This document shows, piece by piece, positions 47,001 to 64,000 of a stretch of DNA of 64,000 bases. This DNA is from Mytilus trossulus (Eukaryota). The position numbers and the translations under genes were made by a program. The stretch's first letter is position 1. Every line of letters starts with the position of its first letter. The stretch covers positions 11,718,001 to 11,782,000 of the forward strand of contig NC_086377.1 in assembly GCF_036588685.1 (NCBI RefSeq), in the 5' to 3' direction. A model generated the notes under the pieces. That model was not told the DNA's origin. It saw only the letters and a program-made list of their open reading frames with translations, and searched no databases.

Positions 47001-47731
47001 CCTGAAATGTTCATCATTCAGCAATTTCAATAAAATATCCAAGCAATAACTGAAATCTTTGTTTATAAATGATTTTTCCTGGAGTTGTTGTTTTCCTTCT
47101 GTCATGACTCAGTTTATGCTGCTGCTTGAAATGAAGCTTTTGAGCAGAATTATCCTAATCAATATGATGGACATCTGTCTTAAAAGGTTAACTGACGCGC
47201 TGTTGATAACGTTGACCGTTATGTAATCGTTTTGTGACATCAAACCATGCTTATGTTGCCAAGGTGAAGCCACAATACCGTGTTGTGTTCGCTAGTTACT
47301 AAAACAAAAACGTATCATTGAATCTTTATATTATGAACACCATGATAAATTTTTATGTTCACTATATGTTTCCCTGACAGATGTTTGTTATTTTTACCTT
47401 TGTATGATCCCTCCTAGTGAACAAACAAGACTGATGTTGAAGTCAGAAGCCCTACAAAATTATATTCTGGAGTTTTGATAGTGTATTTAAAACATTTGTT
47501 AGGCTTAAAACTCTATAAATGACTTTGATTATGATAAAACTACTCCTGACAGAAACAACATTTTAGTTAACATTTTGCAAAGATTATTTTATTTGTAGCT
47601 ATAATCATAAATTATATCAAATAAAAAAATGTGTATATACAAAAAAAAACCATGAGGATCATAAGTTAAGAAGGAAATACATTTCTACTCCTATTTCTTT
47701 GTCTGGTAAATGCTTGTTACAGACTGTCTCT

Positions 47732-47759
47732 TTAATGTTCTTTGATATAACTCATAAAT
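47732..47759 (-). CDS. Micro-exon gene, terminal coding exon ((G)FMSYIKEH*)
   Basis: CATTTTTTCAG acceptor, TAA at 47734-47732, and AATAAA at 47593-47588. Confidence 0.7.
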
Positions 47760-50700
47760 CTGAAAAAATGGACAAATATTATCATTGTAATGTATGCACC
47801 ATAATTACATTATATCAATCCAAAATACTCGTACAAGTATAAATTTGTTGTTTTTTGTACTCTATGCGATTTGATTGCAATTGGTTTATTCTTCATGAAA
47901 CTAAACAGTATGTATGTATGTTCTGCTAAAATATTGTGTCTCTCAGTCCTGGCGTGGTTTGATTAAGCTACCCTGGTTTATATACTTACTAAATCAGGAG
48001 AGACTGTTGTTTATGTTGGTTCCGTTGCTTGCTCTTGAATTTGGTCATGATTTGACTAGATAATAAGTAGGTTTTGATGTTGACATTCGGTTTTTATTGT
48101 ACAAACGTCATAGAAGTCAAAGCTTCCGATTTGTTGAATATCGTACTCTATTGTTCAAGTTGTATTTAAGACATTTTTTTAACAGTACATGTTAGCTCTG
48201 TATAATATTGATTTATTCAGCTTATATTTATACTTTATACGTTGAGATGTTCTTTGTTTGGTGAGTAAATATCAAGTATAATAGCTTACCAATTGTTTTA
48301 AATGAAAACACGTTATTTCAGGACAGTCATTAAAACTAACTAAACAATAAGACAAGTGTCCCTCTAAAGAATATATTTGTAAACATAACGTATGTCATCC
48401 ATCTTCTCTATGAAACGCAAGTGAAAAGATTGTCTGCAGCAAAAATAACATAGAATATGTGGTTTGATTTTTAACGAGACATTTCTCCAAGAGAAACCGA
48501 ACGACAGAAAAATTGACAATTATAGGTCACAAAACCTTCTCTAACAACGAGACCCGAAATGGCAAATGTAAAACAATTCAAAAAAGAAACTAACGGCCTA
48601 ATTTTTGTTCAAAACTAAAACAAAAATATGTGAATTACAGGCTGTTCACTTGTGATAGGCACATACTCATAATTACATTAAGTAATGCCTATCATATGCT
48701 AAATGGAAGAATAAAACAAAAATACGCATGTCATATTTAATTTAACTGATAAACTAAATAAATACTTTAATCTCTAGGTCGTTGTATGACGATTTCATAC
48801 TATGAACTGTCAAGTCATCGAAGAGCAATATGGATTGTAATTTTTATCTGCAGTACTTACCCGCCACATGAACATCTACAATGAGAAAAGACTTAATTAT
48901 ATAAAAACAAGTCGCTCGGACATCATTATTAAACTGTACGTTAATTGGTTCAACAGTTAAACAAAATGTATAACTATTTAATGATGAAACATAAGATATT
49001 CATTGGATTTAAAGCTTAATATATGAACGTTCTAATATAAGCCACAATACACAAGTATTGGAGAGACTTATGTAATATATGTAATCATCTCTTTCTGATG
49101 TTATTCTTAAAAAAACAGAATTCAAAATATCGCCTAGCTTCTTATAACATTAATAGAATAATGTCTTTTTTTTTAAACTGGCTTTATATTTTCCCATTCG
49201 TCAAAAACACCACTCACACCATTCACTATATGGTGTCCATTCATTCTTATGTTCTGTAAACGTATCACAATATACTTATCTGTTTGGTACATAACACTTA
49301 CTGACAACTGAAAAATATAAAATAAAGTTTGAAATATAAGGAAAAACTTCACAAAATCCAAATACATATAAAACATCTTCTCAAAACATCAGTTATCAAT
49401 TTGCTAATTTTAAATATTGCTTTAAATTGCTTGTTTGTTGCTTAGATGAAACTGTGTGAATATTGTCGCTATTCAAACGATGCTTAAATATAAAAAAAAT
49501 GACAAACCAAGTTGTTAACATAACTATCTCCCCCCAAAAAAGTAAATGACTGTTCAAACCGTTTATTTCTTTTGTATTCTGTACTTGTTTTGACTTTCAA
49601 ACTTTTTTCATCTGAGCATAGTTTTCTGAGGACGAAACGCGCGTCTGGCGTATACATTTATTTTAACCTGGTACCCTTTGTTTCTGTGTCCTTTTTTTCT
49701 TCGATTTATTTATTGTAGCCCTGTCGTGTAATGTTGTCATTTTAATGTTATTATTAACATTACCATTAAAGCGGGAGGTTTGATATGCCACAAAAACAGG
49801 TTTAATCCACCATTATTTCATAAAATGCCTTTTTACAAAGTCAGGAAAATGGCCATTGTTACTTTATAGTTCGTTTCTGTGTGTGTTACATTTTGGTGTT
49901 GAGTTTCTGTTGTAATGTAGTTCTCTTATATTTGATATGTTTCACTCAGCTTAAGTTTGTAACCCGGATTTTTTTTTCTTTATCGATTTATGAATTTCGA
50001 ACAGCAGTATACTATTGTTGCCTTTATTTGGAGACGAAACAATTCATAATAGCATCAACTTTTTCTGTATGTGTTTTGTTTCTATGATGCTTATTGTAAT
50101 CATATAGCAATCATATAGCAATCACATAGCAATCATATAGCAATCATATAGCAATCATATAGCAATCATAGTACTGTAGCAAAAAATCTTAACTAATTAT
50201 GTCTGACTTGTTTCGCTTCGTCAAGTGCACGTTACTTTTATCAACATAAGCGCTTCGGGCGTTTTGAATTTTTTAAAGTGTTTTGCTTTTTTTGATAGAC
50301 AGAATAATTATGGAAACACAAAACATACAGAATTGTCGACATTCTTTTCAACATATGTTTACAAAACACGGGCAGTACACATAAACAAACACATGGCTGA
50401 AGGTTTTAAAACTCAGTCCCGAATTTCAAATCATGTCTTATAACTTAATAAACAGTAAACTCAGAAAAAAACTCTGAGGAAATTTCAAAACGGAAGGACT
50501 CTAATCAATTTATTCTCATATTTGAAAAGCTGAGAGCTGTTATTTAAGTACAAACATGCTGTGATTTGACTTTTAATCTTTATAAAAGGGTTATTTGAAA
50601 AAAAAAACACAAATAATAGTTATCTACCAATCAATTTAAAAACACTTCTTAAATATTTATCTTCATAAAATGGTACTAGTATGTTTATTGTTAAATTTTA

Positions 50701-53700
50701 CTGCTTTACTAACGCCATTGTATAACTATCGTCATATTATAGATTGCATTTATAATTGTTTTTTTTATACTTATCTGTGTGCTACTTGACACTTACAGGC
50801 TGAAAAATAAAAAAAACCAACATTGAATACAGCATTATATTGAATTATAAGCATAACGACATGGCAAAATTAAAATACACAACTCATCAAAAATGAATGG
50901 ACAAGAATTGTCATATTCCTGACTTGGTACAGACATTTTTTAAATGTAAAAAATGGTGGAATAACATCTGGTTCTAAAGCGCTAACCCTCTCACTTTGAT
51001 AACAGTCTCATCAAATTCCGTTATATTTACAATGATGCGTTAACTAAACAAACATAATAAATAATATAATCAAAATATGGGAAAAGCAGGCATCATCGTG
51101 TACCAATTTTAAAAGGAACAAGTTAACAGAACACAAAAACATCTATCTACAAACACATTCATTCATTTGCGTGAAACTGTGTAAATGTTGTCGCTATTTA
51201 AACGATGCTTAAATATAAAAAAATGACAAACCAAATTGTGAGCATGAATATCTCCACAAAAGATGTAAATGACTGTTTAAAGCGTATTATAATCTCTTTA
51301 GTTTTGGCTTTCAAACGTTTTTCATCTGAGCATAGTTTTGTGTGGATGTAACTCACGTCTGGCGTATAATTTTATCCTGTTACCTTTTTATGGCCATTAT
51401 TCGTTTACTTTCTCCGATCTATTTATTGTAGCCCTGTCGTGTAATGTTGTCATTTTAATGTTTTAACTAACATTGCCACAAAACCAGGTTCAGCCCATCA
51501 TTATTTCATAAAACACTTCTAAAATATTTCTCTTCATAAAATGGTACTAGTATATTTTTTTGTTAAACTTTACTACTCTGCTTACGCCATTTTAGAACTA
51601 TCGTTATATTATAAATTGCATATATAATTGTTTTCTATACTTATGTGTTTTCTACTTGACACTTACTTGCTGAAAAAATAAAAAAAATAATCACTGAAGA
51701 CAGCATAATATTGAATTATAGTTCAAAAACGTTGACCTTGAGTTGATTTAACCATATGCATTTATGTTGATATGTTAATAAAGTTCTCCAAATGAATTTT
51801 TTTTTATACTTTTTGGCTTTCCCCATCTCTGCTTTCAGTGTCTCTTATGCAGTATAATCTATGAAAGAGGACTGAAAGGTACTAGAGGGAAAGTCAAACT
51901 CATAAACTGAAAATGTCTGATTTGTTCCGCTTTGCTATAAAACATGACTCAAAATACTGATTTTGTTTTTGTGTATACTGCTGTTTGTCATGGCATTGCC
52001 TCCTTGTAGACGTACCTGTCTGAGATACATCATTAAATTGACATGATTATTTATTAACTTAGTAGTCTACTACTACCATTATAACAAAACCTTATATTAT
52101 AAATTGCTTATGTCCATACCTATTTCCTTGCCTAACTTGACACTAAATTGAGGGAAAACTCATACAAATATAACCATAGAAAAAAGCATACAATTTAGCA
52201 ATGAGATTTACCATCGACAATAGAAGAATACCAAAGGTATTTTTGATAGTAGAATATTTTGAAGTGACGGCTTGTTGTGGCAGATTATTAAATTAGTATA
52301 TAAATCAAGTATGTCAAACATTGGAATGTGGTATACAGTATGTGGTTGACTTAAACGTGTCGCTTTATAGATTTAAAAATCATTTAAGAACTAAGGTTGT
52401 ACCACATAAAAGTAAAGTTGAACTGAGGTTGAGTAATCTTGTTTTGCTTATGTTTTTTATAGTCAACTATTTAAACTATTTCGGTTATCATATGTCATTG
52501 GCTTTAAACATTTCTGGTTATACCGTTTTAACGAAGCTATATCATCTGACTCTTATGTTGACGGATAGCACGTCTGTATGACATTATTTATATGGTATGT
52601 GTATTGTAGTGCCTATTCTTTTTACTAACAATATTACATCAAACAACTTCTATTATGAATTGCATAATTTTGTAAATGTAAGCTTTACTTATCTGTTTGC
52701 TACTTGTAACTTACTAGCTGAAAAATGCAAATAATAATTATACACTACAGCATACAATTCAGCAATGAAGTAAAACAACTTCAGTAGAATTACTTGAATA
52801 AGTATCAATATCATACATTTTAAAATGAATTGTGTTATTTCAGATGATTGAAAAGTTTAGTTTATATTGATGTCAATTATTGATACGTGATATTTATGTG
52901 ATTTTTGGATTGGTACATCAAGACTTTCGAAAGACACTTTGGTGTTTTCATCCTAAAAAAGTTGACGTAAGTTAGTTATAATCATATTGATGCATTTTTT
53001 CCATAGACACATACTTCAACAGGTTTGGTACCTTTGATAACTATTTACACCACTGGGTCGATGCCTCTGGTGGACGTTTCGTCCCCGAGGGTATCACCAG
53101 CCCAGGAGTCAGCACTTCGGTGTTGACATGAATATCAACTCAGGATTTTCTTATCCCAGGCATAGATTACATTAGCCGTATTTGGCACAACTTTTTTGAA
53201 ATTTTGGATCCTCAGTGCTCTTCAATTTTGTATTTGTTTGGTTTATAACTATTTTGATATGAGCGTCACTGATGAGTCTTATGTAGACGAAAAGCGCGTC
53301 TGGCGTACTAAATTATAATCCTGGTACCTTTGATAACTATTTACACCACTGGGTCGATGCCTCTGCTGGTGGACGTTTCGTCCCCGAGGGTATCACCAGC
53401 CCAGTAGTCAGCACTTCGGCGTTGACATGAATATCAATTATGTGGTCATTTATATAAATTTCCTGTTTACAAAACTTTGAATTTTTGAAAAACTAAGGAT
53501 TTTCTTATCCCAGGCATAGATAACCTTAGCCGTATTTGGCACAACTTTTTTCGAATTTTGGATCCTCAATGCTCCTCAACTTTGTATTTGTTTGGTTTAT
53601 AGGTATTTTGATATGAGCGTCACTGATGAGTCTTATGTAGACGAAACGCGCGTCTGGCGTACTAAATTATAATCCTGGTACCATTGATAACTATTGGCCA

Positions 53701-56700
53701 TTAAACGTAGAAATGTTAGATAGGAAAATTTAAAATCAAATTTAAGAACATTTTTTGTCCATTGTATATGTTTTCTATCTACGTTTTACCTATTTTGAAA
53801 GAATTCAATCAATAATATTTCAGGATTAGAAAACAGAAATGCATTTTTTTTCTATATTCAGTAATAAAAAACAACAAGCAAAACATGTATATCAAATTTC
53901 AACAATTGTGTTCACTAAATAGGTAAAACAAGAGTAAAGAAAACAAGGATGTCTTTTTACTGTAGAGCACACATGTAATGAGGTAATTACGCCTTTAGTA
54001 AATGCTTCATGTATGTCATGTCTTTAAAATGTTTCACAAACATATTTACATTTAATTGAAATAGATTTTAATTGCAAATATGGTACGCATTTTTTGTCTA
54101 TTGTATATGCTTTCTATCTAACGTTTTACCTTTTTTGAAGGAATTTAATCAGTAATATTTCAGAATTGGAATTAAAAAAAAAAACGAGGATGTATGAGTA
54201 CCGACACCGTATGACAAAAATACCTAAAATTGATAACTAAATTCATCTTAAGTCAACTTTGCAAGAGGGAGTGGAAACCGTAGTTTCTAAATCATTTCAA
54301 AATTTATAAATGGACAATTTTAGAAAAGTTTGTTATGTTAAGTTATGTCAGTAACTAAGTACTGACTATTTATCGACGTTGTCAGTGTATATTAGACTTA
54401 TAAAACTAAATAGATATAGGAAGATGTGGTATGAGTGTCAATGAGTCAATTCTCCATTCAAATAACAATTTATAAAAGTAAACCATTATAGGTCAAAGTA
54501 CGGCCTTCAACACGGAGCCTTGGCCCACACATAACAACAAGCAATAAAGAGCCTCAAAATTACTAGACGTATAACCATTCAAACGGGAAAAACAACGGTA
54601 TAATCTATATAAAAGAACGAGAAACGTAAAACACGTATACATTACATAAACAAATGACAACTACTGTACATCAGATTTCTGACTTAGGACAGGTACAAAC
54701 ATTTGCTGCGGGCTTAAACGTTTAAATGGTACCAAACCTTCCCCCCGTCTTTTTCTGAAACATTAGTATAACATCACAACAAAGACAAACACACGATAAA
54801 ATATCATTCGAAAGGATTAACTCAATCCAAAAACGTAAACTAACTGTATGTTTGGTATCGTTTGAAGACGGGACACACGTTTATCAACATAATTTTAATC
54901 CTGATATTTTGTTAATACGTCTTTGATTGTGTAATATGTTTGCACTGGTAGTGCATTGCTAATTTCATACAATATACTTATCTGTGTGGTACATTATACT
55001 TACATTTTACTGAAACAATAAAAAAAATTATTTTCTTTACTAAGGCAAACAAGTGTTAATAATTTAATACTTTCAACATGTTCAATATAGAAAAAAAGTC
55101 ATTTTTTTATACTAGTAGTTATATTAGGCCGCGTTCACACCAAACGCCGTGTACAGTAAACATGTTTACATTTGGTTTAATGTGATGTAAGCTATTTTCA
55201 CATTAAATTTGTTCACATCTATACACCTTGTTAGGCTACCTGAACACACGATTTGTTCACACTTGTAAACTAAATGTCATTTAAATGTTCATTACGTAGA
55301 ACCGAATTTAAATTTTCGAACATCTTTTCAAGCAGATAGGGAACGACCATTTGACTTTAAAAAAAAGGGGGATGGATTTTTCAACAATTAGATTAAAAAA
55401 CAATCGGGTCATTCAGATGATTAGAATGAACACATATTCTGAATCCAAAGTTTTCCCATACATTATAGTATTAAATATTGAATTGGTACCATCGAAAAAA
55501 TCCAACTAATTTTAAACTTTCGCGCCAGAAAGATTCTGACTCAGAACCCCGTCTTATTTTTGAGTAAAGTGGTTGCTCCTTTAAGAAAGTCATTTTGGAT
55601 GATTTGCAGTAGTTTAAAGATGTCTCGGTTGCGCATTTAAACGCAGGCTCGCTATCAGCGTGCTTACAGAAGAAGAAAAAGAATTGCGATGTTAAGGATC
55701 ACTATATTTATATCTTTTCTGTTTGTTTCAAATGGTATTTTTTCTCCAAGGAGTATTTAGCAAAGGGAGTGGGTTATGTTTTTTTTTTATTATTTCTAAT
55801 TGTATTTTAACGGATCTGAGATACTACACAAACAAACAATTAACTTCACCCTTTTTTCAGTAATGCATGTATGAGTGAATCGTTGTTTGACTATAAAGAC
55901 CAGTGGCAAATATTTCTGTCAGTGTGTACGTCCAACCGATTCAGGAAGACCTTTTCAACTGAATCATGTGTTCGGCAATTATAATGAATGAGTCTTGATT
56001 CGGGATTAATAAGGCTGCGTAAAGTGTTTTTATAACAAATAAATATATAAAATTTAGACAAATAGTTCTGCAAAGAACTTTATTTATAAGTGTCATAAAT
56101 ATCCATTTTATATGAAAAATGTTTCTTTTTGAAATATACATGAGAAAATTAAAGTTCTGAATGCCTAGATTTGTGTTCACTTAACCTATACAAGGCCTAC
56201 ATCGACTATCGACTGCATGTAGACAAAACATGATTTACACTACATGTAAACATTGAGTTTTATCAATGGGAACGTAGTTGTGTTTAGTTTATGTGTGAGT
56301 TACACTTACACAACACCGAGTTTAGGTCAATGTGAACACGGCCTTAGTTGAATATTTTGAAAGAAAAGAGTAAACGTCTCATATGTAATGTCCTTTATCA
56401 AATTCAAAACAATATATATTGAAAAACCATTTTTTTATCACACAGTTTAGATTTAATACATGCATTTTATAATTGCTTTATTGAAATGTGTTCTTTTTTC
56501 CTTTAGGATTCCAAAAAAAATTCAGGTTAAGAGGTTTTATGTCTGTAAAATAACATATCAGATCACCGACAATCTTAAATGGAAAGTACTTTATCAAATG
56601 GCAAATCAAAGACCTAAATGCATCAGCCAAATACATCCATTTGTCATATTCCTGACCAGGTATAGGGATTTCCTTTACGAAAATGAGGGATTAAACCTGG

Positions 56701-58871
56701 TTGTACAACTAACTTAACCGATAATCTGCATGACAGTCGCACATAATGTCATTATATGAGCAACAATGTGTGAGCGAAACAAATTTAATATGTTAAAAGG
56801 GGACTATGTTTTTTTCAATTCCAGTATAATAAATATCAATTGTTCATTTTCTCAAAGGATATTTTCAACAAGATACAATGGGCATTCGAAAATCATAAAA
56901 GACAATAAAAGCATTCATCTCCTTGACATAAAAAGACAGCACTTTTCAAACAAACCATGGACAACTCAGTTGTAACATTTGTCGTGTTGCTCATGTTAGA
57001 ATCTAGTTTTTTGGGGAGTAAAATAAAACAAATTGTTGTTCGGAAAAATGTCACATATCCATGGTTATTATCATAACAATATTTGATTCAACGTCCTCTG
57101 TGCTATCAATAATCCCCAATCAAGAAAATCACGAAAAGTTATAAATCGCTTAGTGAAATTAATAAATCAAATTGTTGAAATCTCAAAGACCTGGTAAAAC
57201 ACCTCATAAATTAAAAATCGTAAACATGATTAGCTTCAACAATTTCCAGCTGTTATCATAAATATCTTGTTTAAATATTGCAGCACGTATCTTATGGTCA
57301 GTGTTTAATAAATTATTCTTTTATTTAATGTGTAATAGCAAAACGATCATGTGAATCAGATACACAATATGTAAACCTTGTCTACAGTAGATGACTATTT
57401 TTATAATAGACGTAGATAATACTTACACATTAACTCTCTTTTCCTGTCTGAAAGATAAAACAGATGGTGTCAGTGGTACATGTTCACGCACAATTTGTCT
57501 AAACAAACATACTGAAAGATATGCTGCTGGTCAATGTAAAATTATGACGCGTTTTTATTATTGAGAACTGTGGTCAAGTTCTTCGATGTTGTTCTGGAAA
57601 TTTCAATCAAACGAAGCTGTAATATTTTACCAGGAAATGAGTATAGTATTGTTAGACAAATTTTAAGTCGTCCTCGCACCATACATGTTTCTCTTTAAGA
57701 ATGACATCTATATACAGTTGAGAATGGAAATGATGAATGTGTCAAAGAGACAAAAACCAGACTTCAGAGTAACAAAAGGACAACGACCACCAATGGATCT
57801 GTAACACAGCGATAAAGTCCTGCAAGTTCCGTGAAAATAAACGTCATTCATATCTCCAATCACATTAAAGAACTGAAATTAAAATTGAAAAGACAAACAA
57901 AGACCATTTTCCTGAATTCAGAAACACGCAAAAATGCGGTGGCGTCAGAGAAGTTTAGTGAGATCCCAACTTTCCATATGCTTACATATCAAAGTATTTA
58001 CAAGTTGAGATGTAGAATTCTGCTCTTAAACACTCTTTCTGTTTTTTTTCCATTGATGGGTTTAACAGATTGCTAAAACATTGCAAACATCTACAATGTA
58101 TGTGGCTTTGAATAAGAACAAATGACAAAAGTCGCATTTTCGAAGACAAAACATATTCTGCACTTCATTGAAATTATGGAATAAACATGTGTTGTCTTCA
58201 TAAATTTGATACGCCATATGATGTAAATATTCAATTTTGTGTCATGTCTATAGAAACAATAATAATGAACTTACCGACAGTTGATACATCTAAACAGGTT
58301 TTTCCCTTGCTCCTTTGGCATCACATCCTGTTTGTATTCACTGTAATAAGCAACACTATTGATTGACATACAATTTACTCTTTTCGAAGATGATATTAAA
58401 ATCCAACAAGCTCTTACTAACTGATACACATATAAACAGTGCAAAAATATCAAAAAGGCATTTGAAATATATACGAGAGTCATAAACCAAGTTAATGAAT
58501 CTCGAATTAGGTGAAATAATAATCTATAAGAAAATATAAATCCGCTCACACCCAGACAGAACTGCAATTGTGTTTAACAGAAAGATATATTGCTTAAATT
58601 CAAAGAGGTTTCCAATGGTTTGTCAATACGTTGCGTGCCTAATGTTTGACAAGACCTTTTAATTAACTTCGACTTTTTATTTAGCTGTAATAGTCTTATT
58701 GGTGTATGTCGTTCCTTTAAAACAAATCGGATGACATCACCAAAACAATATAAAAGATTACACCAACAAGGAAACAATTGATTAAAGTCATTCTTTTTTT
58801 TTATATGTTCTAAATCCTCATAGAATTATTCCTAATTTGCATACACTTTTCCCTCTCTTTCCCTGTCTGTC
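47732..58871 (-). CDS. Micro-exon gene encoding a small C4 zinc-ribbon-like protein (at least 10 exons; 5' end unresolved)
   Basis: Exons 58871-58845, 58340-58275, 57447-57427, 55009-55004, 52717-52715, 51669-51667, 50799-50797, 49307-49302, 48875-48861 and 47759-47732. All have a pyrimidine tract plus AG; donors are GTAAGT (one GTATGC); all introns are phase 2. Joined, they read ...TDREREGKVEYKQDVMPKEQGKNLFRCINCRQEKRVNVKIYNLCQCSCGGFMSYIKEH*. Confidence 0.8.
48861..48875 (-). CDS. 15-nt micro-exon ATGTTCATGTGGCGG (CSCGG)
   Basis: CTTTTCTCATTGTAG | exon | GTAAGT. Confidence 0.8.
49302..49307 (-). CDS. 6-nt micro-exon TTGTCA
   Basis: TTTTATATTTTTCAG | TTGTCA | GTAAGT. Confidence 0.8.
50098..50170. 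repeat. 11-bp tandem repeat (AATCATATAGC), ~6.5 copies
   Basis: Directly visible in the sequence. Confidence 0.9.
50797..50799 (-). CDS. 3-nt micro-exon CCT
   Basis: TTTTTTTATTTTTCAG | CCT | GTAAGT. Confidence 0.75.
51667..51669 (-). CDS. 3-nt micro-exon CAA
   Basis: TTTTTTATTTTTTCAG | CAA | GTAAGT. Confidence 0.75.
52715..52717 (-). CDS. 3-nt micro-exon CTA
   Basis: TTTGCATTTTTCAG | CTA | GTAAGT. Confidence 0.75.
53263..53306 (+). ncRNA. Minimal type I hammerhead ribozyme, stem III mismatch
   Basis: GCGTCA-CTGATGA-GTCT.TATGT.AGAC-GAAA-AGCGCG-TC^TGGCGT. Confidence 0.8.
53617..53660 (+). ncRNA. Minimal type I hammerhead ribozyme, intact
   Basis: Stem I GCGTCA/TGGCGT, core CTGATGA...GAAA, stem II GTCT/AGAC, and a minimal stem III with a palindromic GCGC loop. 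GUC cleavage is predicted after 53654. Confidence 0.92.
55004..55009 (-). CDS. 6-nt micro-exon TAAAAT
   Basis: TTTTTTATTGTTTCAG | TAAAAT | GTAAGT. Confidence 0.78.
55127..56343. mobile_element. Non-autonomous PIF/Harbinger-like element with a nested MITE (~55337-55583)
   Basis: TIR GGCCG(C/T)GTTCACA with a TTA TSD at 55124-55126 and 56344-56346. The nested element starts TAGGGAACGACCATTTGA, related to the end at about 1895-1915. Confidence 0.8.
57427..57447 (-). CDS. 21-nt micro-exon (QEKRVN)
   Basis: TGTTTTATCTTTCAG | ACAGGAAAAGAGAGTTAATGT | GTAAGT. Confidence 0.8.
58275..58340 (-). CDS. 66-nt exon of the micro-exon gene (EYKQDVMPKEQGKNLFRCINC), contains the candidate start ATG
   Basis: CTTATTACAG | exon | GTAAGT. 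Only the phase-2 frame is open. Confidence 0.8.
58845..58871 (-). CDS. 27-nt micro-exon (coding TDREREGK, or 5' UTR)
   Basis: TTTTTTATTGTTTGTAG | GACAGACAGGGAAAGAGAGGGAAAAGT | GTATGC. Confidence 0.6.
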
Positions 58872-59404
58872 CTACAAACAATAAAAAACTAAATGAAATG
58901 ACGAACTATTTTAATTGAACCATTCATAAAACAGCATATTTGTAATCTCGTTTCAACTTGTTGAAAAACTATATACGATTTCTCCAATCATTTTGTAATG
59001 ACTGATAGTTCTCAATTATACTATAAAATCGAAACCACTTGTACTAATTTTATGTGCATTTCGGGAATGTGACTGATTAAACCATTCACCCGTCAACAAA
59101 AGTCGATTGTGAAAGTGATTACTGGAATACTGGATTCGTTAATCTACAGTCTACTGTCAATGTGACTGCTGAATCGTTTACCATTTCATCAACAGTCGAT
59201 TGTAAATGTGAATGATCAAGTGGTTGAACTCCTCAAGACGACAGTCCATTGCGAATAACTTTGTGAATCGATAATATGTTAAAAAGAGTTAAAAATATCA
59301 CAAAGAGGACATTTCCATATGAGGAAAGATATGATATACGAAGACTATTTACAAAAGTACAGACTACACTTAACAAAACAGTATGACTTTGTTATTATTG
59401 TTGT

Positions 59405-59580: not shown

Positions 59581-62500
59581 GGCGTCTTTTGATTGCCTCA
59601 ATAGTTAAGATAACTGTGATGAATGACTTTTATATTTTGGTTATATCGTTTAAGTTTAAAGAGTTTCTAAATATTTCAACTAGATAAGCAGGCACGTTTT
59701 AACGAAAATTAAATGCAACAAAATCTTACCACTATTGAAAAGAATTTATGATACTAGTATGCGTTTGCATATCATAAAAAGACAAATTTACTTATATGTA
59801 ATCGTGCTCGAGCCAGTGTGTTCTAACGTACTTAGTGGAAAAACGCGGAGATACATAAACCATAGAGGCATTCTATAAGTATAAACAGGTTTTAAATATA
59901 TATTAACTAGACAAACTGGCACATTTTAACGAGCAGTATATTAACTGAAATTAGATGCAACAAAATCTAAACCCTATTGAAAAAATGTATGCTACTAGTA
60001 TGCGTGTGTATATCATAAGAAGACTTATTTTATTGTGTAATTCACTCAAACATTTGATAACAAGTTAACATTGTCAATTACGTAAATCTAAAAACTGTAA
60101 AATATACAAATATATTTCCCTACCTCTTGGGTGAAGGCAGTTCATGGTTTGTTGTGTACGCATTTCACTAATAAAAGACAACTGAAATTTTCACATTTTT
60201 TTTCAAAGGTTTTGTCAAGTGTCAGGAGTATAACAGTTGTTAACACATTTTCTTTGTATGTTGGCGTTTGTTTTTGTAGCAGTACTGTGTTAATGTTGTG
60301 CTGTTGCTTTTCACTTGTAGTTGATGGGTGTTTCCCTCAGTTTTGTTCTGATTTTTTCTCAGTTTAATCGACATATTACTACTATAAAGCGGTATACTTT
60401 TATCGTCGTTATTTCTTTTATAATATTGCATAAAATGCATGAAATTAGAATAACATATTTAAATAACGAGAAAAACAGATAAGTCTGTTCTTGTTTGAAA
60501 GCAAGTATTTTTGCATTTCAATATATGTTTACATATTGTCAAGATTGGTAAATGTACATGTATCAATACAACTTAAACTGTACACTGCCATTTATCTACT
60601 GGAGCACATTTTGAATCCATAAAATTGAACAATACATGTGTAATGAACACATACATGTATTTCATGAATTATCTCCCCTTCGACTGTCATATCATATCCA
60701 GACATAAGTTGATATTAAAAAAAAACTACTTATATGTGATTTTTCAAAAATACGTTTCTCATCTAAATACTATGGTTATATTAGAGCTTTCTTACAAATT
60801 TACGAAAGGTACGTATGCTTGACGAATCATACGCAAAACTCGTTTTAGGGAGCCTTTATTTTGACATATTTAAATAGTCCTGGGACTTTGAACAATTATC
60901 CTACATGCAATTACACTTATTAAACGGATTTTTTCTTGACAAGTACACAAAAACTGTCGCATTGGAAGAGAAAGCAGATTCTGCTCTACATGACAATGCA
61001 ATTCTGCTTACTCTTACATAACATACACCATTTGAAGATACATGTATGTGCCTGTTTCAAGTCAGGAGCCTATAATTCAGTGGTTGTCGTTTGTTAATAT
61101 GTTACATATTTGTTTTTCGATAAAAAAATAAATTATATAGATAAGGCAGATTGTTTTATCGTTTGAATTGTTTTATATTGTCATATCGGGGCCTTTTATA
61201 GCTGATTATGTATTATGAGCTTTCCTCCTTGTTGAAAGCCGTACGATGACCTATAGTTGTTTATGTCTGTGTCGTTTTAGTCTCTTGTGGACAGTTGTGT
61301 CATTGGCAATCATACCACATCTTCTTTTTTCTATGTCCTCTCTTCCAATATGAATGAGGGAAGAAAATAAATAAACACAAGAAACTTCAAAGTTAACCGT
61401 TGAATACCAACAAGAAATTGATATCGTTCATGTTTTCTCAAAACTAGTCCCAGTATTTTAAAGTATATTAAGCAAAAGAAAAGGCATGTTGGGACCTTTC
61501 AACATAACATTGACAAACAATCAAACAAAAACACAAATACATTATTTGTTTAACTTAATGTTTACTTACTGTTCTAAATCGATTTGTGAAATGAAGGATT
61601 ATTAGTGCAACAAAACAGAAATCAAAATATTACATCCCGTAAAAGAGATAAAGGCAACATAAGTATACCGCTGTTCAAAACTCATAAATCGTAAAAAATA
61701 ATCCTGGTTACAACGTAATGTAAAATGTAGCATATTAATCTATTGCAATAAAAATTCATAATTTCAAATAAAATTTGTAGATTTAGCTAACTAGTTCCTT
61801 ATATTAGTATAAAATAACATTCGTTTATAGTGGAACATTGTTTTAACAATGTATTAGCTACAATTAAAATTTGCTTGCTAGTCCCTCTCTGTGATCGCAA
61901 AAAGATAACTCTGACTCATTTCCCAATTCCCAGTGGAAGATACTAGCAGGCAAAATCGAGGGAATTGTGCAAATGATGATACAAGCATGAAAATTACCAC
62001 AAAGCATCATTATTACATACTTTTGAAGAAACAACTGCTGGCCATTAAAAAAAAATAAATTTCAAGATGGCCACCGCCGTTTTATCAAATGGCTGTTTTT
62101 TTCAGTTTAAAAATACTGATTTTTTTCTGGAAAACTTTTCGTTTACCTTCTTTTAGTGAAAAACAGCTGTCAGGTTTGGTAGCTTCCTTCTTAACATGTG
62201 AATAATTCACAAGACATGAGTATTTGACACATACAGGGTTTGCACATGCGCGAAAATGTAACAAAATTCATTAAAAAATATTTTAACTATTTACTATAAA
62301 ATAATTGATTTGGGATTTTCACTGATATTATGATTTGGTTTGATAACATTTTTCAAGGTTATGACTCGCATGATTTAACAAATTTGCGCATGCGCAAACT
62401 ATTTATAGACATAATGAGTGATTTGTATGCACTACCAGGGCAAACTGGTATAAATCGTAGTTCATCTCATTACGCGAAAAAGCAAGTATTACTAAAATAT

Positions 62501-64000
62501 ATGATTCCACTGTTTAAAAACAAGCCAATTCAGTTGCAATGATCAGGTATTGGATGGATAAGACGGAAAATGTGGATAAAACGAGAAAAAACATAAATAG
62601 TAACGGCAGATCAGCCACTTTTGGTAATGGATATTCTGTGGGAATTGCCTGATTTGTACAGAGAAGATAAGTTTATCGTCATGTAAGGTGGATTTCACAT
62701 TGAAATGACTTGTTATAAAATTCTGGGTGATATATTACGTGAAGGTAGATGGACACATGTGTCATGTGTCCTCACTAAAACCATTATTGCAACACCTAGA
62801 ACGGCATATTCTTGTACATGTTCAAATTTACCTAAGACTAGACACGCGCATCAGATAACTCCATGTGTTTTATCTTCAAAGGTATATATCGGCTTAAGAA
62901 AGCTAAACACAGAAATTATAATCATGTCATGACTCTGTGACGTTCAATGATTTGATAAACTGGCGTAGGAGAATATAGTCATCTCTATCACAGTTCAACT
63001 CCTGGCGTTCAATTATAAAATAAGAACTTCTTGTGAATTTGGTAGTATGCTTATTTCATGAGTCAGATTTTGTACAAACAGTCCATATAAAGCATGGTAT
63101 TGTATTCATTTAGGTCTTGATCGTGTAACATATTCTCGATCGCAACCGACCTTCTCCGAGATATGGCTTCCCTTCTTTTAAGTCACCCACAGGTGGCAAT
63201 TGATTTTGAAAATGATAATTTTATTGTACGTAAGACCAGAAAATAGTTTTCTTATAACACAATTGATCAGAAAAAAAACAGAATAATGCAATTGTAAAGG
63301 GCGATGTGTTGTCATAGGTTTAACCGAAGACCTCATTTAGACGTATTGATAGTAGCTAGACCAGAAGTCAGTAGACTATTAGATACATTTGCAAGATCTA
63401 GTGGTTTGAGGCATTCTATAAAAGATGAACGACTTAATGAACACACAAGGGTTTCTTTAAAAAGATCAAAGGCAAATAATTTGAAGATCGTTTGAAGCAA
63501 ACACAAAACGAAGGAGAACCGGTTTCTTATAACCAGATTAAAAATAACAACTCCTATTATGTCGGTAAAATAAAAGTGTAAACGTTTTTGTAAAAAACAA
63601 AGTTAGAGCTCTCAGATATCTTTTCTAGACTTTTATTTGTTGTCGCAGTGGACAAATTGATTTGGAACATTTCTTATGCCATAAAGACAAACTGCTTCTC
63701 CGTTTTTGTCTTCGGATGTCATTATAAACAGTGGTATTAAATCAGTGCAAATGTATAAACTTGAAACATTTTGTAATTTGCAGATCCAAATTCTGACGTA
63801 TTTATGATCGTTGATAGAGCAGCAATGGTTAATTCCAGGCCACTTTGTAGGTAATCAATATTCGATGATTTTGCAATTTTGTTATACGGCCTTAAATAAA
63901 ATTTTGCATCGATAAGTATTCAAGCGTAATTATTGTGATAGATTTACTAAATCAATCATTGAAAGGCTAGATGTGAGAAGACAAAAGTTGGGTTCTGGAG

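Follow-up and report, generated by a model that had tools for sequence, protein, structure and literature searches.

We found that a chain of 3- and 6-base exons on the minus strand of a stretch of Mytilus trossulus DNA (64,000 nucleotides, here called the window) is real and belongs to the tail module of a family of dozens of mussel B-box genes, which are inferred, from position and genomic sequence alone, to build a variable cysteine-knuckle tail from tiny exons. The copy in the window has lost the front of the gene. The preliminary description, made from the sequence alone, had proposed that these segments form a hidden, self-contained gene beginning with a 27-nt exon and encoding a zinc-ribbon loop assembled from micro-exons, comparable to the schistosome micro-exon genes (MEGs). 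The sequence features that it described are all present where it placed them, and its observation is therefore confirmed, whereas its interpretation is only partly supported. The features of the locus, including three that it did not describe, are as follows (window positions; D numbers label families of duplicated sequence).

60790..60869 (minus strand): remnant of the upstream (B-box/coiled-coil) exon, with 24 open codons ending in phase 2 at the donor TTT|GTAAGA (exon end 60796), an in-frame ATG at 60833-60831, and a stop at 60872-60870 that closes the frame upstream.
58880..58891 (minus strand): dead first cassette, reading tag-TTT-tttatt where paralogues read cag-TTT-gtaagt.
58845..58871 (minus strand): the 27-nt segment proposed as exon 1, donor GTATGC, judged not to be an exon but the downstream flank of the dead TTT cassette.
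58275..58340 (minus strand): exon 2 (66 nt), phase 2 to phase 2, encoding EYKQDVMPKEQGKNLFRCINC(R) with the first CxxC knuckle; the ATG at 58321-58319 is unique to this copy (ATA in 20 of 20 paralogues), and ATC-AAC between the Cys codons is also specific to it.
57427..57447 (minus strand): exon 3 (21 nt), encoding (R)QEKRVN; a homologous 21-nt exon is present in all 20 paralogues examined.
55004..55009 (minus strand): micro-exon TAAAAT (6 nt), with the pseudo-donor ATAAGT at 54981-54976; its flank is 78% identical to that of the TTGTCA cassette (D5).
52715..52717 (minus strand): micro-exon CTA (3 nt; D4), with the pseudo-donor at 52692-52687.
52116..52150 (minus strand): dead cassette, a duplicate of the upstream flank of the CTA cassette (D12), in which the flank is kept but the triplet and GTAAG are deleted.
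51667..51669 (minus strand): micro-exon CAA (3 nt), with the variant pseudo-donor CAC-ATAAGT at 51644-51639.
50797..50799 (minus strand): micro-exon CCT (3 nt), with the pseudo-donor at 50774-50769, lying in an 872-nt local duplicate of the CAA unit whose flanks are 85-92% identical (D6 and D10).
49302..49307 (minus strand): micro-exon TTGTCA (6 nt), with the pseudo-donor at 49279-49274; paralogues have TTATCA, TTATCG, TTTACA, CCATCA or TTCTCG at this position.
48861..48875 (minus strand): 15-nt exon ATGTTCATGTGGCGG, encoding the second knuckle, C-x-C-G-G.
47570..47759 (minus strand): terminal exon, encoding (G)FMSYIKEH, with the stop TAA at 47734-47732, a 3' UTR of about 140 nt and AATAAA at 47593-47588.

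Eight of the nine donors in the described chain are GTAAGT, and each acceptor has a pyrimidine tract followed by AG. To ask whether such a series could arise by chance, we scanned the whole window for a pyrimidine tract (at least 70% pyrimidines) followed by AG, 1-30 nt and GTAAGT, and found 8 hits on the minus strand, 7 of which were this chain, lying in a row and enclosing 3 to 21 nt, and 3 hits on the plus strand. The chain is not chance. Frame arithmetic on the joined exons reproduced the stop-free frame and a 43-aa open reading frame (ORF) starting from the ATG at 58321, and 30 of the 32 skipping combinations of the five micro-exons reached the normal stop.

The five 3- and 6-nt exons are paralogous duplicates of one another and are not a stand-alone oddity. 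Exon 2 has 39 matches in the genome including the window, with 89% DNA identity to the best paralogues, and 37 further copies lie in a 2.5-Mb cluster at 8.13-10.61 Mb of the same chromosome (C5); all 40 genomic matches to the CCT cassette are likewise on C5. Of these 37 copies, 29 have a B-box (PF00643) hit 2.3-14.5 kb upstream and 35 have the 15-nt exon downstream, on the same strand. The open frames at the B-box hits are about 240-300 aa long. A pattern search found a 23-mer, comprising the 15-nt exon and its splice sites, that is identical in the window and in about 20 paralogues, and about 50 cluster copies in all, in which the TGT codons are kept, the middle codon is variable and GGC and GGA are used synonymously (TGT-NNN-TGT-GG(C/A)-GG). 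About 25 genomic copies of the terminal exon are 81-89% identical to that of the window, and two paralogues differ by one base (His to Gln). The KQDV.PKEQGK..RC..C motif of exon 2 aligns with the paralogues, with both Cys invariant, and the cassettes share a conserved flank (pyrimidine tract, CAG, NNN, GTAAGTGTCAAGTAG.AAACAGATAAGTA), with five live cassettes and one dead one in the window and 116 cassettes in the paralogue loci and window together. By its exon 2, cassette chain, 15-nt exon and terminal exon the window copy belongs to this family, which comprises about 40-50 B-box genes.

Comparison of 20 paralogues supported the view that these segments are genuine coding micro-exons in the frame given by the preliminary description. 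That frame had 0 stops in 704 codons, against 62 and 32 in the other two frames. Both exon-2 Cys codons were TGT in 20 of 20 copies, whereas the codon between them had 10 variants, almost all NNC; its two variable sites had diversities of 0.65 and 0.77, and none of 574 intron sites reached 0.6. Cassette triplets had a diversity of about 0.70, against 0.12-0.18 in their flanks. The CGT cassette was invariant in 20 of 21 copies, and TTG was always followed by CGT, which spells TG|C, a Cys codon. Because the copies are related by recent duplication, these counts are not independent. Other tests were weaker: the overall pN/pS of exons 2 and 3 was 1.4 on about 15 synonymous sites, which taken alone cannot be told apart from neutrality; a shuffled-order null for the avoidance of stops by the order of cassettes was not significant (p = 0.15); and the idea that exon 2 is less diverged than its introns was rejected as unreliable once the intron was split into bins, and exon 2 of the window copy is no less diverged than the nearest upstream intron. 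The first Cys of the window's CQCSC is not conserved in paralogues, which have Tyr, Leu, His or Ser there.

The window copy is diverged and truncated at its 5' end. Homology to more than 30 paralogues starts at window positions 60,799-60,783 (query positions 902-919), right at the donor of the missing upstream exon, a point that in paralogues lies a modal 645 nt after a PF00643 hit. No B-box-like frame was found between 60.8 kb and the end of the window at 64 kb, a Pfam search of ten upstream frames and of exon 2 gave nothing, and an Rfam search at the gathering threshold gave nothing in 46-62 kb. The TTT cassette is dead: 15 of 17 paralogue copies have TTT with a perfect GTAAGT, whereas the window copy has 4 changes in the 9 splice-signal bases (1 in CAG and 3 in GTAAGT). 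The 27-nt segment is homologous to the intron flank “gtctgtagGAAAGACGGGG...” that follows this cassette in paralogues, of which one has a 9-nt deletion there and another a 1-nt deletion. In about 2 kb upstream of exon 2 in paralogues, no in-frame ATG was found, and a TATA-like box lies near 58,975 in the window. In contrast to the loss at the 5' end, the remaining tail shows 0 changes in about 66 splice-critical bases, despite roughly 5-20% divergence of the flanking introns from the paralogue consensus. The deleted cassette at 52,150 serves as an internal control for what an unconstrained cassette looks like. This copy is the most diverged of those examined, has its own set of cassettes (TAAAAT, CTA, CAA, CCT and TTGTCA) and lies 1.2 Mb from the main cluster on the opposite strand.

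Three protein searches with the exon-2 frame found no family member, although all three were underpowered. A profile search against 1.84 billion representatives returned one unrelated actinobacterial beta-trefoil repeat protein, but a 22-residue match would score below the threshold, so that this blank means little. Word-based searches with a 100-aa and a 41-aa open frame around exon 2 found nothing, but they covered only proteins of roughly 23-72 and 55-175 aa, a range that excludes full-length B-box proteins.

Taken together, these results led us to favor, with reasonable confidence, the view that the locus is a diverged, 5'-truncated member of a large tandem gene family. The chain and its frame, the duplication of the cassettes and the size and order of the family were shown directly, and the coding signature in paralogues and the truncation of the window copy support this view, whereas the structure of full-length members, the joining of the B-box exon to the tail in one transcript (from position only), the zinc-ribbon fold and metal binding, exon skipping and the expression of this copy are inferred, as is the suggestion in the preliminary description that standard gene finders would miss it. 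In full-length members, one large exon would carry a B-box, probably followed by a coiled coil, and would be followed by a 9-18 kb tail of symmetric, phase-2 exons: a TTT cassette, a 66-nt exon with a CxxC knuckle, a 21-nt exon, a variable number of 3- and 6-nt cassettes, a 15-nt exon encoding C-x-C-G-G and a short terminal exon. Because every exon starts with the third base of a codon and ends with two bases, each cassette would split two codons, so that cassettes could be duplicated, lost or skipped without a frameshift. In the commonest two-cassette module (variable triplet plus CGT), the products would be a codon of form NNC, which can never be a stop, and a GTN valine, so that the loop would grow in steps of “variable residue plus Val,” an alternation typical of a beta-strand. 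About 70% of cassettes carry an uncleavable donor look-alike (AG|ATAAGT), mostly exactly 22 nt after the real GTAAGT, which plausibly recruits U1 snRNP so that a 3-nt exon can be defined, although this is inferred. A reading in which this pseudo-donor is invariant was rejected, as it is exact in 81 of 116 cassettes and degenerate in the CGT cassettes. The window copy has lost the B-box exon and the TTT cassette but otherwise keeps every splice signal and an open frame and has gained an ATG. In our judgment it still gives a spliced transcript encoding a 43-aa tail-only peptide (or about 61 aa if the upstream remnant is used), but that step is unproven, without a demonstrated promoter or first exon, and only slightly more likely than a recently silenced relic; for this copy, the question is whether a detached tail can survive as a microprotein gene.

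The main alternative, which we regard as possible but somewhat less likely than not, is that the window copy is a transcriptionally silent pseudogene fragment, a partial duplicate of the tail that lost its promoter and B-box exon and whose intact signals reflect recent inactivation or gene conversion from paralogues, such that the micro-exon architecture is real in the family but does nothing here. Consistent with this, the truncation falls exactly at the upstream donor with a repeat-like stretch beyond it, the TTT cassette is dead, the copy lies away from the main cluster, no protein of 23-175 aa with its exon-2 peptide was found in the public protein collection, and the ATG could be a chance ATA-to-ATG change. 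On the other hand, all other splice-critical bases and the frame are intact while the introns have diverged and two unconstrained cassettes in the same locus have decayed, the 23-mer around the 15-nt exon is identical to that of about 20 paralogues, and local cassette duplications with changed triplets (CAA/CCT) continued in this lineage.

The model as originally proposed, a stand-alone zinc-ribbon microprotein gene beginning with the 27-nt exon and forming an independent bivalve analogue of the schistosome MEGs, seems unlikely. Although the frame is open through the 27-nt segment, the ATG in exon 2 has a purine at -3 and a polyadenylation signal follows the stop, that segment is cassette flank with indels in paralogues and a weak donor, the locus is clearly a piece of a B-box gene family, and no signal peptide or other start exon was found. 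Very unlikely is the possibility that the cassettes are noncoding intronic repeats, such as recursive-splice or decoy sites or a locus-restricted repeat that happens to carry AG-NNN-GTAAGT. AG next to GTAAGT does resemble a recursive splice site (YAG|GT; PMC5126111), and the units spread by duplication, so that their 3-nt length is inherited rather than independently selected. However, recursive sites have no bases between AG and GT, whereas here there are always 3 or 6 (103 of 104 cassette-type hits, and none of length 3 on the opposite strand), the triplets are either hypervariable or strictly fixed in a pattern that makes sense only as codons, the 704 codons contain no stops, and the cassettes occur only inside the C5 gene cluster and not genome-wide.

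The schistosome MEGs (PMC10526429) share with the mussel family runs of very short exons, mostly multiples of three, separated by 0.1-5 kb introns, with tandem duplication of the units, fast-changing exon content and the possibility of frame-neutral skipping. However, MEG proteins are secreted, a conserved N-terminal signal peptide is their only shared motif, most of their coding sequence is micro-exonic and their typical exon is 15 bp. Here the modal exon is 3 nt, every exon splits codons, and the N-terminal part is a B-box exon in paralogues (absent in this copy); symmetric micro-exons make up most of the 43-aa ORF of the window copy, which starts inside exon 2 with MPKEQGK, but only the C-terminal tail of the inferred full-length proteins. 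No sequence similarity to MEGs was shown, and, with no signal peptide seen, the locus is not a member of the MEG families. Isolated 1-3-nt micro-exons in animals and plants (PMC4674806, PMC8042270) show that spliceosomes can include exons of 3 nt or even 1 nt, but those are single exons within ordinary genes, whereas here up to eight or more 3-nt exons follow each other, each in a conserved cassette of about 60 nt. As in the recursive-splice (RS)-exon model (PMC5126111), where a downstream GT helps define the site, a strong acceptor sits directly beside a consensus GTAAGT with a second donor-like element downstream, but a recursive site leaves no bases in the mRNA, whereas these units would leave 3 or 6, and the downstream element starts with A and so cannot be cleaved. 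Zinc ribbons have two zinc knuckles, usually CxxC, on beta-hairpins that bind one zinc ion; here CxxC and CxC pairs, conserved at family level, are separated by a stretch with alternating hydrophobic residues, as in a knuckle-hairpin-knuckle layout, but the second pair is C-x-C and exon 2, searched on its own, had no Pfam match.

A more speculative reading, which we consider unlikely but not excluded, is that 40-50 mussel B-box genes use chains of codon-splitting 3-nt exons as a germline diversity generator that also works through splicing, in which stop-proof (NNC/GTN), frame-neutral cassettes, each helped by an uncleavable U1 landing site, would build a hypervariable beta-hairpin of adjustable length between two fixed Cys knuckles for recognition in innate defense. 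The window copy would then be a domesticated tail-only microprotein, for example a decoy or regulator of the full-length proteins.

If transcripts confirm it, this would be the most extreme run of consecutive 3-nt exons that we know of and the first micro-exon gene system found outside parasitic flatworms in the literature searched, in which no bivalve micro-exon gene was found. It would bear on the old question of how a spliceosome can define an exon far smaller than its own footprint, which becomes directly testable here because more than 100 natural cassette variants exist with and without the downstream pseudo-donor. It would also show a new way of making a hypervariable protein loop in an invertebrate gene family of a type (B-box) that is expanded in bivalves (PMC8382680).

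The observation made in the preliminary description was confirmed, as the minus strand of 47.7-58.9 kb contains exactly the segments listed there, of 27, 66, 21, 6, 3, 3, 3, 6, and 15 nt plus a terminal exon, each preceded by a pyrimidine tract and AG, with GTAAGT at eight of the nine donors. To ask how unusual this arrangement is, we scanned the whole window for a pyrimidine tract (at least 70% pyrimidines) followed by AG, 1-30 nt, and GTAAGT, and found eight hits on the minus strand, seven of which belong to this chain, and three on the plus strand. Joining the segments in silico reproduced the stop-free frame, which includes a 43-amino-acid open reading frame (ORF), and 30 of the 32 inclusion/skipping combinations of the five micro-exons still reach the normal stop. 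The features of the window that are referred to below, with the 3- and 6-nt exons named by their sequence, are as follows.

58321 to 47734-47732, minus strand: 43-amino-acid ORF, from its ATG to its TAA
47593-47588, minus strand: AATAAA following the stop codon
49587-49661 and 51301-51375: weaker relatives of the 75-nt block that also occurs in the hammerhead-like pair below
50081-50179: 11-nt microsatellite (TATAGCAATCA, about 7-9 copies) in the intron between the CCT and TTGTCA exons
52150-52116, minus strand: dead micro-exon cassette
53263-53306 and 53617-53660, plus strand: two hammerhead type-I-like ribozyme motifs 354 nt apart in the intron between the TAAAAT and CTA exons, antisense to the tail, scoring 22 and 33 bits, just under the Rfam gathering score of 34, which fits a retrozyme
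58319-58326, minus strand: start-stop upstream ORF, ATGTGATG
60,799-60,783: point at which homology to the paralogues ends
60,796, minus strand: exon end at the donor TTT|GTAAGA
61040-61400, minus strand: stretch upstream of this donor that resembles a common mussel interspersed repeat

The five 3- and 6-nt exons sit in paralogous cassettes, each consisting of a T-rich tract, CAG, the triplet or hexamer, and then GTAAGTGTCAAGTAGCAAACAGATAAGTAT. Their length in multiples of three is therefore inherited and does not represent five independent coincidences. A sixth cassette, at 52,150-52,116, keeps the conserved flank but has lost the triplet and GTAAG, and its pseudo-donor has decayed, making it useful as an internal neutral control.

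We next placed the window, which corresponds to positions 11,718,001-11,782,000 of chromosome C5, in the context of the 1.3-Gb genome. A search with exon 2 and its flanks gave 39 matches, of which 37 lie on the plus strand and 1 on the minus strand between 8.13 and 10.57 Mb, whereas the window copy is an outlier on the minus strand. The CCT cassette gave 40 matches, all on C5, and the terminal exon gave about 25 copies. A degenerate pattern for the 15-nt exon found about 50 copies in the cluster and also hit the window, two more minus-strand copies just beyond it, and a related exon in a second cluster on C11. The two copies beyond the window, at C5:11,802,202 and 11,848,500, encode C-S-C-G-G (with a synonymous TGC) and C-L-C-G-G; they lie on the same strand as the window copy and suggest a small distal subcluster, although no exon 2 homologue was detected near them. 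The C11 cluster (30.1-37.7 Mb, minus strand) is a second large B-box cluster, and its related 15-nt exon (xTGTTCTGGTTGTGG, C-S-G-C-G) has a perfect GTAAGT; the micro-exon tail may therefore be older than the C5 family.

A search of the genome with the Pfam B-box profile (PF00643) placed hits 2.3-14.5 kb upstream of 29 of the 37 plus-strand exon 2 copies, on the same strand, and the 15-nt exon lies 5-24 kb downstream of 35 of the 37. The full-length members are thus most likely B-box genes with a micro-exon tail, although that the B-box and the tail belong to one transcript is inferred from position only.

To address whether the cassettes are coding, we examined 10 kb from each of 20 paralogues; the 3′ halves of the paralogues and their B-box exons were seen only through coordinates and short pattern matches. 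Hits with 3 nt (90 hits) or 6 nt (14 hits) between AG and GTAAGT far outnumbered those of other lengths, which were mostly artefacts inside exon 2 or at a donor, and the opposite strand had no 3-nt hit. When the detected exons were joined, the frame proposed in the preliminary description had 0 stops in 704 codons, compared with 62 and 32 in the other two frames. In exon 2, both Cys codons are TGT in 20 of 20 copies and the KQDV.PKEQGK core is almost invariant, but the codon between the two Cys has ten variants, nearly all of the form NNC. The first two sites of this codon have nucleotide diversities of 0.65 and 0.77, whereas none of 574 flanking intron sites reaches 0.6. Similarly, cassette triplets show a diversity of about 0.70 inside flanks of 0.12-0.18. 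The CGT cassette, in contrast, is invariant in 20 of 21 copies, and TTG is followed by CGT in 6 of 6 cases, spelling TG|C, a Cys codon, across two exons. The 15-nt exon keeps TGT-NNN-TGT-GG(C/A)-GG, such that the middle codon varies and the Gly codon shows synonymous changes, and one neighbouring copy has a synonymous TGC.

Other tests were weaker. The overall pN/pS of exons 2 and 3 is 1.4 on few sites, and shuffling the order of the cassettes raised the number of stops only to 1.5 on average (P = 0.15); moreover, the copies are related, so these counts are not independent events. Protein searches returned no family member, but they were underpowered or restricted by a length filter. Fixed cysteines and valines mixed with hypervariable single residues make sense only as protein-level selection.

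Comparison with the paralogues also showed how the window copy differs from them. The 27-nt segment, taken as exon 1 in the preliminary description, is the flank of a first cassette: paralogues read cag-TTT-gtaagt-gtctgtag-GAAAGACGGGG there, whereas the window reads tag-TTT-tttatt-gtttgtag-GACAGACAGGG. This cassette is dead, and paralogues carry 9-nt and 1-nt deletions inside the supposed exon. Homology continues upstream, except for a dispersed repeat of about 1 kb that sits 1-2 kb upstream of exon 2 in the cluster paralogues (positions 1-1050 of one of them, locus L029, and the same position in others). Copies of this repeat are 85-89% identical on at least ten chromosomes and 93-98% identical among the cluster paralogues, and its absence from the window copy indicates that it was inserted after the window lineage split off. 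The homology then ends sharply at 60,799-60,783, beside the donor TTT|GTAAGA, which closes an open frame in phase 2, the phase that the tail needs.

In paralogues, that boundary lies a modal 645 nt after the start of the B-box hit. In the window, however, the frame is closed by a stop 24 codons upstream, and the 3.2 kb further up contain repeat-like sequence and no Pfam-detectable domain. The copy therefore lacks its B-box exon, at least in the expected place and within the DNA up to position 64,000. The repeat-like stretch at 61040-61400 (an initial homology search gave 15,818 candidates) may mark the event that removed the B-box exon. The ATG of the 43-amino-acid ORF is ATA in all 20 paralogues, and it is preceded by a one-codon upstream ORF whose TGA overlaps this ATG, a possible reinitiation arrangement.

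All of the remaining splice-critical bases of the window copy, about 66, are canonical, even though the flanking introns differ from the paralogue consensus by roughly 5-20% or more, depending on the segment. The TTT cassette, with 4 changes in its 9 signal bases, and the deleted cassette at 52,150 show what unconstrained units look like in the same locus. Under neutrality at 5-10%, the chance of no hit in 66 sites is about 0.03-0.001, although this is a rough figure because some cassettes are young local duplicates. We concluded that the tail was under selection for splicing for most of its history, which does not imply that it is still expressed.

The arrangement of the exons suggests how the tail might vary. 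All tail exons are phase 2 to phase 2, so that every cassette gives the third base of one codon and the first two bases of the next. The commonest module is a variable triplet followed about 550 nt later by CGT, which would yield one NNC codon, covering 15 amino acids and never a stop, and one GTN valine. Partial loops in paralogues read IMHVNVCV, KLTVCVR, KLHVCVG, and LFCVLG, and the window reads RVNVKIYNL. This alternation of a variable and a hydrophobic residue would suit a β-strand or hairpin between the two Cys knuckles, and such a hairpin would lengthen two residues at a time. In addition, 81 of 116 cassettes carry AG|ATAAGT, 75 of them exactly 22 nt after the true donor, and the invariant CGT cassettes have degenerate versions. 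The motif cannot be cleaved as a donor because it begins with A, but we hypothesize that it could still bind U1 and give the spliceosome an exon-definition handle, as the downstream GT does in the RS-exon model (PMC5126111).

Schistosome micro-exon genes (MEGs), with which the chain had been compared, share the short symmetric exons, long introns, and rapid exon change, but they are defined by a signal peptide and a mostly micro-exonic coding sequence, with 15-bp exons typical (PMC10526429). Neither holds here, so the present system is an analogue of the MEGs and not a member. Single 3-nt and even 1-nt exons are known (PMC4674806), but we found no report of long runs of them, and literature searches for micro-exons in bivalves, molluscs, or Mytilus found nothing relevant. 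B-box families are among the gene families expanded in bivalves (PMC8382680). The zinc ribbon proposed in the preliminary description remains a motif-level guess, with no Pfam hit.

Taken together, these results partly support the original interpretation. The chain and its frame, the cassette duplications, and the size and order of the family were observed directly, whereas the joining of B-box and tail in one transcript, the β-hairpin, the zinc ribbon, the role of U1, and expression of this copy are inferred or conjectural, there being no RNA evidence. The micro-exon architecture is real and unusual and belongs to a large B-box gene family, of which this locus, its expression unproven, is a truncated but still well-kept tail.
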